DNA from: Mizuhopecten yessoensis
Lineage: Eukaryota
DNA length: 64,000 bases
Assembly (NCBI RefSeq): GCF_002113885.1
Contig: NW_018408735.1
Location: 116,084 to 180,083, forward strand
Reading direction: 5' to 3'
The position numbers and the translations under genes were made by a program. How positions within the stretch are numbered: the stretch's first letter is position 1; every line of letters starts with the position of its first letter. Below the pieces are notes generated by a model that saw nothing but the letters and a program-made list of their open reading frames with translations, was not told the DNA's origin and searched no databases. Positions 29,201 to 35,200 of the stretch are shown here, piece by piece.

Positions 29201-32200
29201 TGGGTAAAGTATGCTGCCTTTACAACAGGAGAGACAATGTATGATGTTGGGTAAAGTACACTGTTTAGAGATCAGGATAGACATGTCTGATGTTGGGTAA
29301 AGTATACTGCCTTTACAACAGGAGAGACAATGTATGATGTTGGGTAAAGTACGCTGTTTAGAGATCAGGAGAGATATGTATGATGTTGGGTAAAGTACGC
29401 TGTTTAGAGATCAGGATAGACATGTATGATGTTGGGGTAGATACAGATGATGGGCACTGCCAGGAACCACAACATAAGATTTGATAAGATGTTGAAACTA
29501 AGTGTTCACTGCCTAGATCCACAAAATGACTATGAAATTTGATGGGAAGCTGATGATTAATTATCTTGACCCGTAGCTAAATGCAAGAAATGATGTGTAA
29601 ACTGAGTGTCCATTGCCTATAAAGACAGAAATAATGTAGCATGTGACAGCCAAGGTGAGGCAGAATTTGTGTTAGCTGTAATGATGTGGTATGCTGCTTA
29701 TAACAGCAAAATATTTTTCAGATATGATTGGGGTGTACACTGCCCAGAAAGGTAGACAAAAGTATGATGTGATTGGGGCAGTACACTGCCTAGAACAGCA
29801 AAACAAATGTTAGATAAGATGGGGGGGGGGGGTATATATTTCTTAGAATAGCAGAAATGTATTATGTATCGATTGAATACCAGTGATAATCAAAAAAATG
29901 TATAATAACACGAGAAAAGGGGCGTAGACTGCCTGGAACAGCAGGGTAGATGTTCACCAATGGAAAGGCAGGATGGAACCTAGATGGTTTGGAATTTATG
30001 GGTGAAGATACATTACATGGAACACCAGGATATGTAAAGATGGTACAGGATGAGAAGATTTGCACACTATTTGGAAAAGCAGGTTGGAATTAACACAAAA
30101 AAGGAAGTAATTGTGCTCCGTAGGGAAGAGGAAACCAAAGTGTTGTATGATGATATCCTGGAAAAGTCAGTCTATATTGAGCAGACTTCAGGATCCATGT
30201 TATTTTGATGTCTTACCTAGGACACAGATACGATAAATTGGTTATAAGTATTAGTTTCCAACTTCAAGCAACTTTTTAAAGATTTAATTTGACATTTAAT
30301 TTGACATGTTTGTTTCTTCTTTATTAATCTAACAGATATAATGGTATACTATCTGCTAGCCTGATGGCTGGTACCAGTTTCTTTTGCACAGGCTAGTGGA
30401 AAACTTAATATGTATACTGTACTAGCCCTGAGCCTTTGAAAAACACAACCAGTTTGTGAAGACATGTAGCTATACACCCAAAAGTTTGGTCAACTAAAAG
30501 TGATGGTGACCAGGTGTTAATTGTCATGTTATAAAAGACCAATGTGTTAAAACAGCACAAGAGATGGTTAGGTTTTATGATATTAATACATGATGGCCTA
30601 GATTCCAGTGTTATGCCTTAACATACCTCATTGACAATAAAATCTAAAAGCTCAAAAATGGCCATGGGGCGTGGTCCATCACTGCCGGGCGGCGTGGGGA
30701 AGCTAAAGCTATTTCTGTTTGATCCTAAAATGCACAAAATAAAATCAAACAGCAACATAAAATGTAGAACAACATACCAGTAAGCATAGAGTATTCAGAG
30801 AACAATCAAAGCTCCAGGCCAAGTCCAGTACACAGTCACACCAACCCAGGCAACAACACGGGCGCCACCGCCACACACATTTCATTTTAGATTTGAAATA
30901 TTTTTGGAATGATTTATTACCAAGATTTTGAAAATCAAATTTTGATGCAACATACCTCACAACTTTTAACATAAAAATAACCTTTTCAAGATCATTTACC
31001 AATAAGTTTGGTTGGTGGATTGGTTCAAGTCTTGGCCTGGATGTAATCAAGTCATACAGTTACAAACCAAAAACAGATAAGGCAGATGTTGACACTATAT
31101 ATATATGGACAGTCTCAGCAGTTACCCACAGACACCCCGCCCTGCTTCAGACACACCCTACACTTAGTAGTCCTGCTACAGACACACCCTACACTTAGTA
31201 GTCCTGCTTCAGACAAACCCTACACTTAGTAGTCCTGCTACAGACACACCCTACACTTAGTAGTCCTGCTACAGACACACCCTACACTTAGTAGTCCTGC
31301 TACAGACACACCCTACACTTAGTAGTCCTGCTACAGACACACCCTACACTTAGTAGTCCTGCTACAGACACACCCTACACTTAGTAGTCCTGCTACAGAC
31401 ACACCCTACACTTAGTAGTCCTGCTACAGACACACCCTACACTTAGTAGTCCTGCTACAGACACACCCTACACTTAGTAGTCCTGCTACAGACACACCCT
31501 ACACTTAGTAGTCCTGCTACAGACACACCCTACACTTAGTAGTCCTGCTACAGACACACCCTACACTTAGTAGTCCTGCTACAGACACACCCTACACTTA
31601 GTAGTCCTGCTACAGACACACCCTACACTTAGTAGTCCTGCTTCAGACACACCCTACACTTAGTAGTCCTGCTTCAGACACACCCTACACTTAGTAGTCC
31701 TGCTCCAGAAACACCCTACATGTAGTTCTACTTCAGACAGACACACCCTACACTTAGTAGTCCTTGTTCAGACACACCCTACACTTAGTAGTCCTGGTAC
31801 AGACACACCCTACACTTAGTAGTCCTGCTCCAGAAACACCCTACACGTAGTCCTACTTCAGACAGCAAACCCTACACTTAGTAGTCCTTGTTCAGACACA
31901 CCCTACATTTAGTAGTCCTGGTACAGACACACCCTACACTTAGTAGTCCTTGTTCAGACACACCCTACACTTAGTAGTCCTGCTTCAGACACACCCTACA
32001 CTTAGTCCTACTTCAGACAGACACACACCGTACACTAAGCCCTACTTCAGACACACTCCCTACACCAAGTCCTGCTTCAGACACACCCTACACTTATAGT
32101 CCTGCTTCAGACAAACACACTACACTTAGTATTACTTCAGAGAGACACACACCCTACACTTAGTCCTCCTTCAGACACACTCTACACTTAGTCCCACTTA

Positions 32201-35200
32201 GACCCAACCTACACTGCATCCTTTTTCACACACCCCATACACTTATTATTCCTGATTAAGGCACACACTACAGTTAGTATTCCTGTTTAAAACACATCCT
32301 TCACTTAGTATTCATGTTTCAGACACACCCTACATTTAGTCCTATTTAGACACAACCTACATTTAGTCCTGCCTCAGACACACACCCTACACTTAGTTCT
32401 ACTTCACACACACCCTACACTTAGTATATATATATATATATTCCTGTTTCAGACACACCCTATACTTAGTATATATATATTCCTGTTTTAGACACACCCT
32501 ATACTTAGTATATATATATATATATATAAATATATTCCTGTTTCAGACACACCCTGCACTTAGTATTCATGTTTAAGACACACCCTACACTTAGTACTGT
32601 TTCAGACACACCCTACACTTAGTATTCCTGTTTCAGACACACCCTACACTTAGTGCTGTTTCAGACACACCCTGCACTTAGTATTCCTGTTTCAGACACA
32701 CCATACACTTCGTATTCCTGTTTCAGACACACCCTACACTTAGTATTCATGTTTCAGACACACCCTACACTTAGTATTCCTGTTTCAGACACACCCTACA
32801 CTTAGTATTCCTGTTTCAGACACACCCTGCACTTAGTATTCATGTTTCAGTTACTCTCTACACTTAGTATTCATGTTTCAGACACACCCTACACTGAGTA
32901 ATCCTACTTCAGACACACCCTACAATTAGTAATCCTACCTCAGACACACCTCACATGTAGTCCTATAAGAATTAGCTTTAATTTCCAAGTTTCCAGAACA
33001 ATGCAAAAGCCATAAGAATGCTTTTAATAGTAAAAGTCACATACCTAGTCTACTTGCTTTGTGTCTGAATTATTTTGAGGAATGTTTCAAATACAAAGGT
33101 CAAATGCATGCATGGACAGAACTCATTTATATATTTACAACCAATTTGTTGCACTGAAAATGATACAAGGCAAAATTCCAATATGAACATTGATAACCCT
33201 TGAAGCTAGATGAGGATCAATAACTCTATTTCAGTGTTAAGTCTGATGATATTTACCAACTCTGTATGCATAAATAATTTCTGATGAAAAACCATAAATC
33301 TAGATGAGGATCAATAACCCCTCTTACTAGGTGAAAAATGGGTATTGGGAGCAATCTTTTGTCCCTTATCTCAAAATTGTGTTTAAGAAGTGAACTGTTC
33401 GGAGCCTAACTCTGTATATAGCGAGGAACAAGACCCTATGTCAGTGTGTGATACTCTACAATTAAAGAGGTGCTCACATACAAAATTGGTAATTGTAGGT
33501 TACACATTATACCCCGAGATATACACAGGACAAGGTAAACAAAGGACCATAACTCAGAATACTATGAGCCACAAGAATGAAGTTACCAATAGGTATGCAA
33601 CACTCATCCCAACTGGTCCCATACAAAATTTGGTAAAAGTAAATAAAAGAGTGAAAGAGATATGTTCTGGGCAAAGTGACAGACTGATGTATAGAGTGCT
33701 TACTTGTAGTACCCTCCGTAGTACAGGGGAGGTAGTAGTTACCCAAGATTATCGTGAGGTAGTAGTTACCCAAGATTATCGTGAGGTAGTAGTTACCCAA
33801 GATTATTGTGAGGTAGTAGTTACCCAAGATTATCAAGAACTACATTAGTACAACTGCACATCACTAACCCTATGTGAAAATCAATCAGGCAAAGGACTGA
33901 AAGAAATCCATAATCACCTACATCTACACAAACTTTGGGTGTACAAAGACTCCTAAATCTTTATTCAGTGGGGTATAAGCCCTGATTTCTGTACACAACA
34001 CTCCACCATCCCAAGAAGTTCTTAATATACATACAAACATTTTCAATTGTAGGTGACAAAATGACACCTGGGCAGACAGACTGATGAGGGATATAGTGGA
34101 AAATCCTTCAGATAGTCCCAATGGGCCATAGACTAAGTGATACATTCCCAGGTGAGTATCAATAAACCTACATAATTATTAATAACTCTCCTAGATGAGG
34201 ATCAATAACCTTAGGAGAGGATCAATAACCCTAGATGAGGATCAATAACACTAGGTGAGTATTAACAACAACCCTAGATGAGGATCAATAACCTTAGGTG
34301 AGAGGTGAGTATCAATAACCCTACATAAGTATCAATAACCTTATAGGTGAATATCAATACCCTAGATGAAGCTCAATAGCCCTAGATGAGGATGAGTTTT
34401 CCTAAATGAGCATCATTTCATTAGAAAGCACCAATCAATCTAAGTCACTCAAATGCTACAAACACCAGTATCTTGTAAACTCTGTTAGTAACATTCTCCC
34501 AGTAAAACCTACGGACTAGTAACCTGTGGAACAGCTGATGGTAGTGGGAGATCTAGAGCAATAACACGTCCAACATTCCATGATTACTATGTCTGAAGCA
34601 GGTGGTGCTACTGTGGTGAGATTCCCTTGGACAGGTCGTGCTTTACCTCATTAACTATGTATTCTAGTAGCTCAAATATGGCCATAGGTAAGGGGCCGTC
34701 TCCTGTTATCACCTGAAAGTCGCCTGGGCAGCCTGAAATGGGCAGTAGATCTCTCTTACACCACACAGTACATGCACAAATATCTTACAGGCACTGTCCA
34801 CAGGTGTTGCATGCTTGAAATGTGTAATCCATCTTCTTGTATGCGGCTAAATTAGAGGCTACAGTACTTGTATGTACTATACACCTCCCTCTATGTGCCT
34901 TACAAGTTGTGTATGGTGGTGTAAACAACCTCCCTATGGAGTTTACCTGTTCATAGTGTAGGAGGGTTTACTGTATTCTTACTCATTTTCTACAAGGGAT
35001 TTAGATTTTGTGAACGCACAAGAGTTTACCAAATCAAGAATCTTGGAAATGCTTTGCACTTTTGAAATTTTACAAAAGACTATTCTGAAAGTCAGTGTCA
35101 AAATGTCAATGTTCCCAGATTTGTGTGAAAGATATAGATTTTTTTTTTTAAAAGGAACAATTAAATTCACCGACTTCATTAACTATAGTGAATAAATTCT

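Follow-up and report, generated by a model that had tools for sequence, protein, structure and literature searches.

Tandem-duplicated exons that are used in a mutually exclusive manner are a common class of alternative exon, and the FGFR IIIb/IIIc and JNK exon pairs belong to it. In exons 7a/7b of ATE1 (PMC7797038) and exons Ab/3 of U2AF1 (PMC5224494), the closest described systems, the two members are paralogous, have equal phases, and enter the mRNA one at a time. Here, we describe a pair that appears to share these properties, exons 8a and 8b, in the MEK1/2 gene of the scallop Mizuhopecten yessoensis, using a 64,000-nt stretch of contig NW_018408735.1 (positions 116,084 to 180,083, assembly GCF_002113885.1) that we call the window and whose numbering we use throughout. 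MEK1/2 (MAP2K1/2) proteins are recognized by a kinase core and activation-loop serines homologous to those of MEK1, and by an insert before the alphaG helix; the gene in the window belongs to this class, matching human MEK1 chains at E 3e-177. The RefSeq proteins XP_021372354.1 and XP_021372355.1 are the two products of the window, exon for exon, with every residue of isoforms X1 (8b) and X2 (8a) matched by window exons, which were compared singly and joined only for locating stops and for folding. Taking all the evidence together, we consider it likely that this single gene carries an ancient, mutually exclusive exon 8 pair, with 8b as the default form, 8a as a regulated form, and altered docking of the 8a protein.

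Exon 8a (34647-34732, 86 nt) and exon 8b (30627-30724, 98 nt) are adjacent on the minus strand between exon 7 (37277-37466, 190 nt, ending in phase 1 and holding the first part of the kinase insert) and exon 9 (21961-22022, starting in phase 0). Both are intact, paralogous, of equal phase, and bounded by canonical AG/GT splice sites, with coordinates, phases, and peptides exactly as given in an earlier note made from the sequence of the window. The same note held that each exon alone keeps the frame and that both or neither lose it, and the location of the stops bears this out: exon 7 joined to 8a alone or to 8b alone leaves the frame open to the stop in exon 11 (products of 397 and 401 aa, respectively), and 8a and 8b together, or neither, bring in a premature stop. 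Purifying selection on both copies, also proposed there, agrees with the difference between them over the shared last 18 codons, where the proportion of non-synonymous differences (pN) is 0.095 and that of synonymous differences (pS) is 0.92. Only 39 of the last 54 nt are identical, with a longest exact match of 8 nt, and copies so divergent represent an old duplication, not an assembly repeat. DNA over 8a was recovered in four independent scallop runs from four studies, the Argopecten orthologue contains both exons, and no third exon 8 copy is found between exons 7 and 9 of the window. There is hardly any doubt that the two exons are genuine, ancient, and maintained by selection.

Both isoforms are on record in scallops, oysters, mussels, a freshwater mussel, abalones, caenogastropods, pulmonates, a slug, and octopus, and RefSeq already lists the two for about 20 molluscs. 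The order exon 7-8a-8b-exon 9, with the same phases, occurs in eight genomes of three phyla (the molluscs Mizuhopecten, Argopecten, Haliotis, Octopus, and the chiton Liolophura; the annelids Lamellibrachia and Owenia; and the nemertean Lineus). These separate isoform records and this conserved order support the mutually exclusive use put forward in the earlier note, and two of the outcomes named there as telling against it, loss of an exon in related species and an assembly artefact, were not encountered: the pair is kept in eight genomes and the copies are too divergent for an assembly artefact. Amphioxus has one exon 8, and one Limulus gene shows a single exon 8, but with a 1-kb gap in that intron. 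A tree of the short peptides unites the 8a copies and places 8b beside the single exons of the outgroups (support 0.83-0.90), so that 8b is ancestral-like and 8a derived. As judged from these sequences, the duplication cannot be younger than the mollusc-annelid-nemertean split, dating to over 500 million years ago, and would have arisen once, before the three lineages parted. After the duplication exon 8a became nearly frozen, with a mean identity of 91% over 28 codons and a pN of 0.02-0.09 vs a saturated pS of 0.65-1.07; the first half of 8b varies widely between species.

In one butterfly and one bird protein, the motifs are doubled by near-exact repeats of neighboring exons that look like assembly duplications, and gene models containing both exons (Lamellibrachia, Dimorphilus, and one Biomphalaria) are bridged by intron-derived sequence and were not counted as double inclusion. 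In caenogastropod 8a isoforms (P0217, P0361, P0373, and P0374 in our protein set), 8a is preceded by an additional Cys-Pro-Gly stretch of ~16 residues with an internal repeat, which may reflect a second small duplication. Oyster isoforms (P0165, P0193, and P0350) have six extra residues between exon 7 and either exon 8, for which a micro-exon or an alternative donor is a candidate.

What the pair exchanges in the protein can be placed by comparison with vertebrates. In vertebrate read-through proteins among our search returns, some of which may be human, exon 7 ends after S298; T286, T292, and S298 are therefore exon 7 residues, and exon 8 corresponds to S299-E320. Exon 8 thus contributes the final part of the insert together with the alphaG helix. 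In the AlphaFold models, alphaG lies at the end of each exon; the model with 8a is of low overall quality (mean pLDDT 59.5). Through alphaG, MEK engages the F-site of ERK, D315 touching N274/K276 of ERK1, and MEK F311A is not phosphorylated by BRAF (bioRxiv 10.64898/2026.03.13.710243); in simulations, D315 forms a salt bridge with R671 of BRAF that is absent with KSR1, and residues 305-307 contact the BRAF activation loop (PMC9068654). The 17 8a variants without exception carry Glu at the D315 position, and a Cys close to their start is invariant; in 8a, Leu (Gln in Lineus) replaces the usual Arg two residues before M308. Among the 40 distinct 8b variants, 36 have Asp at the D315 position, and 21 contain a basic-Ser motif, R-x(1,2)-S-hydrophobic, which is present in no 8a variant and is a plausible PAK/PKA-type site, an analogue and not an orthologue of S298.

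On these alignments, the conserved difference between 8a and 8b lies in residues of the docking surface and in a possible PAK/PKA-type site rather than in an ERK feedback site. The switch would exchange the last part of the insert together with alphaG, through which MEK docks to RAF, KSR, and ERK, and the 8a form would lack the basic-Ser motif, begin with an invariant Cys-Pro-Gly, and carry the Asp-to-Glu change at D315 and the Arg-to-Leu change two residues before M308. Exon 8a most likely alters the coupling of MEK to RAF/KSR/ERK or to a basophilic kinase, and not a T292-type feedback. Altered partner coupling is our best functional guess, and one that may as easily fail as hold.

The two exons also differ in their splice sites. 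In all eight species, 8a has a GTAA donor, mostly with a base other than G at +5 (as in the window), and 8b has a strong GTAYGT donor; the mean pyrimidine tract values are 0.58 for 8a (weak) and 0.77 for 8b (strong). Intron sequence flanking the pair is conserved with Argopecten over 61-120 nt (61 nt upstream and 71 nt downstream of 8a, 34576-34793; 120 nt upstream and 81 nt downstream of 8b, 30546-30844) vs 3-15 nt at most constitutive exons. The intron between 8a and 8b ranges from 71 nt in Lineus to 3922 nt in the window (219-3099 nt in the six others), with those of the chiton and Lineus being short. In the window this intron contains a conserved non-coding block (31024-31153), the 5′ end of which (31153-31126) pairs with the downstream flank of 8a at 34616-34589 (8a+31 to +58). 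This stem 1 has energies of -51 and -56 kcal/mol in the two scallops (z -4.4 and -6.2), and in abalone the analogous positions form a 17-bp stem whose sequence is unrelated (z -4.6). The 3′ end of the block (31041-31031) can pair with the region upstream of 8b (30823-30813) as a weaker stem 2, which is not significant in Mizuhopecten (z -1.1).

Frame and nonsense-mediated decay (NMD) are the sole mechanism of exclusivity available in every species: in 8 of 8 species, the reading frame of an mRNA with both exons ends within 8b, and in 7 of 8, that of an mRNA with neither ends in exon 9. Steric hindrance is excluded for the scallop, where the 3922-nt intron far exceeds the criterion of ~50 nt from donor to branch point, and U2/U12 incompatibility is excluded because all donors are U2-type (GTAA or GTAYGT) and all acceptors AG. 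A 13-bp hairpin over the 8b acceptor, present in both scallops, did not exceed shuffled controls across species and was rejected as a general feature. Rbfox, UG-rich, and ACUAA motifs showed no consistent pattern in the eight species, GCATG occurring upstream of 8a in five of them. In the mechanism we propose, 8b would be the default through its strong splice sites, and the weak sites of 8a would make it a regulated minor exon; exclusivity would be enforced at least by frame, with mRNAs carrying both exons or neither presumably cleared by NMD, and may be tuned by conserved intronic elements, by the long-range stem in bivalves and abalone, and by a frozen element within 8b.

This element is a 15-nt segment encoding F-E-L-L-D (30642-30656), the silent sites of which are frozen across three phyla. 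In seven species, the five codons show a single deviation from the majority codon vs 13.9 expected, with 15 in 8a, when resampling treats sites as independent. The five-codon window was picked after looking; the test of the whole 8b helix was not, and gave 11 silent-site deviations vs 28.8 expected. In the frame produced by joining 8a to 8b, the element contains a TAG in 8 of 8 species, the equivalent triplet of 8a being TAG in only 4 of 8, and without it the next stop in the double-inclusion frame of the window lies in exon 10. The hidden stop accounts for one silent site and not for all of them, from which we infer a protein-bound or decoy element; the 15 nt resemble a 3′ splice site, and no conserved pairing partner was found for them. 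The single exon 8 of Limulus (L008) matches the element at 14 of 15 nt, and the element may therefore predate the duplication.

Further conserved or repeated sequence surrounds the pair. Non-coding blocks at 35821-35697, 27368-27255, 25806-25714, and 22560-22491, in the introns around 8a and 8b, are conserved with Argopecten, and no pairing partner was found for them. A minisatellite at 31141-32964, with a 31-nt unit that includes the 13-nt stem 1 partner arm (34 copies with <=1 mismatch), abuts and repeats this arm and is absent as an array in Argopecten, which has one copy only; its copies pair at -25 to -29 kcal/mol, weaker than the original arm at -44 kcal/mol. A second minisatellite, at 36024-37279, begins at the donor of exon 7, which it reiterates in 25-30 donor-like copies of a 32-nt unit, and Argopecten has at the same place (L010 5881-6818) an array of 33 copies of a different, 27-nt unit.

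Each exon is found alone in transcripts, the join of 8a to exon 9 resting on database records. Among 41 classifiable transcript-assembly proteins, 40 contain 8b (391 contigs) and one contains 8a (1 contig), a ratio that is rough, as two of the three query searches were 8b-type. Argopecten RNA contigs are spliced from exon 7 through 8b to exon 9, and an oyster RNA contig joins exon 7 to 8a. Full-length proteins joining 8a to exon 9 are recorded for about 20 species, including an Arion UniRef entry without a genome contig, and records of these kinds rest on transcripts. We conclude that 8b is the default form and 8a a minor one, probably restricted by tissue or stage, and that productive, mutually exclusive use of the two is very probable.

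Several observations weigh against parts of this reading. Over 34400-36000 of the window, contigs from the four scallop runs, which are RNA-like, pass unspliced through 8a with no junction, no joints, and no loose ends, in runs picked with intron words in the query, which favors unspliced material, and from contigs that drop rare variants. Several records, together with the oyster RNA contig, show 8a followed by a retained intron. A conserved long-range intronic stem is present in the two scallops, with an analogue in abalone, and no analogue of stem 1 was found in octopus, Owenia, or Lamellibrachia. Four of the 40 8b variants likewise have Glu at the D315 position, so that this residue alone is not diagnostic, and AlphaFold leaves both variable segments disordered or with low confidence. 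The missing 8a junction would be expected of a dead or recent duplicate, or of an assembly artefact, but conservation across three phyla, divergent copies under purifying selection, and DNA in independent runs already refute this explanation, the probability of which we regard as practically nil. The unspliced contigs and the models ending in 8a (Argopecten, chiton, octopus, and Mactra) do hint that the intron after 8a is spliced slowly or retained, and, with the oyster contig and the weak 8a donor, they could mean that 8a serves mainly in unproductive splicing, in which transcripts keep the intron or end within it, yielding truncated or degraded RNA and a lower MEK dose. The amino acids of 8a are near-invariant while its silent sites are saturated, so a translated 8a protein is required; this, with the full-length 8a-exon 9 proteins, makes unproductive splicing as its main role very unlikely. 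It is doubtful, too, that exclusivity depends on docker/selector RNA pairing as in Dscam1 or ATE1, with the conserved block at 31153-31024 as the docker: this block does pair with the flank of 8a and can pair with the region upstream of 8b, and abalone has its analogous stem of different sequence, but the arms of stems 1 and 2 do not overlap and the stems can therefore coexist, no rival of similar strength competes for one docking site, and no compensatory change is seen between the two scallops.

The earlier note had gone further, proposing that the scallop gene makes a MEK1-like isoform (8b, with a Thr-Pro site for ERK feedback) and a MEK2-like isoform (8a, without it). T292 feedback is MEK1-specific (PMC10605237, PMC3398258), which counts in favor of this proposal, as does the distribution of S/T-P, which is present in none of the 17 8a variants and takes the form P-[ST]-P-P in the 8b of scallop, ark clam, mussel, and unionid. 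However, the swapped segment is the end of the MEK insert, as the note had it, but does not carry the equivalents of T292 and S298, which sit in vertebrate exon 7, outside the swapped exon; nor is the insert in lophotrochozoan exon 7 proline-rich, as had been supposed, being modelled by AlphaFold as a helix. The Thr-Pro of the scallop 8b does not generalize: S/T-P occurs in just 9 of 40 8b variants and is absent in oysters (which have Gly there), abalone, most snails, chiton, annelids, and Lineus. As S/T-P is this patchy and the exon pair is kept throughout, Thr-Pro cannot be why the pair is conserved, and the parallel with MEK1/MEK2 feedback falls, the proposed pair of feedback isoforms being unlikely. 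Thr-Pro feedback could be a bivalve add-on.

The whole gene has 11 exons on the minus strand, running from the ATG at 42671 to the stop at 20248-20246: exon 1 (42583-42671, with the D-site), exon 2 (40055-40283), exon 3 (39651-39797), exon 4 (38983-39060), exon 5 (38488-38539), exon 6 (37967-38091), exons 7 to 9 as above, exon 10 (21371-21416), and exon 11 to the stop codon (20246-20335). Upstream of the gene is a run of 834 N (43997-44830), and ribosomal protein L17 (L22 family) is encoded on the plus strand (48160-55950), head-to-head with MEK, an order also found in Lineus and Octopus (L002 1-277; L006 1-323), i.e., a conserved microsynteny.

The RAS-ERK cascade has its bottleneck at MEK, and work on spiralians, such as that on organizer signalling and on plasticity in Aplysia, uses MEK heavily and treats it as one protein. 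Our analysis makes two MEK versions from one gene possible in molluscs, annelids, and ribbon worms, and a nearly invariant second docking-helix exon in three phyla implies that the second MEK matters. Exon 8a is a natural variant of the surface central to structural work on RAF-MEK, and the frozen 15-nt element and stem 1 are compact candidate splicing signals. We suggest, tentatively, that the pair is a cell-type-specific switch of the RAF/KSR/ERK docking surface, in use in lophotrochozoans for more than 500 million years, that makes two differently coupled or differently phospho-regulated MEKs from one gene, with exclusivity backed by the hidden stop in 8b and by a long-range stem that has turned over in sequence.

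No description of the MEK 8a/8b pair was found in the searchable literature, which does not cover subscription papers on scallop MKK genes; the class is well known, and its MEK1/2 instance in lophotrochozoans can already be found among unlabelled RefSeq isoforms. In Mizuhopecten and other molluscs, these models are automatic annotations, for which we found no account of age, regulation, or function. The Dscam1 and srp docker-selector systems (PMC4691838, PMC6071210) resemble MEK in having conserved intronic complementary elements by duplicated exons; unlike them, MEK has one strong stem inside the 8a-8b intron, and a group of rival selectors sharing a single docker was not found. Pairings likewise compete in ATE1 (PMC7797038), whereas the MEK stems are non-overlapping and competition is not established. 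The ATE1 and U2AF1 pairs are otherwise much like the MEK pair, with conserved flanks, splice sites of unequal strength, and long-range intronic pairing, but the lengths of the MEK exons, unlike theirs, are not multiples of 3, and frame alone therefore penalizes the inclusion of 8a with 8b. The vertebrate MEK1/MEK2 pair is, like the scallop isoforms, one kinase core in two proteins that differ in the insert region; the scallop pair is made by splicing and not by gene duplication, and the part it swaps is the equivalent of S299-E320, i.e., the end of the loop and alphaG.

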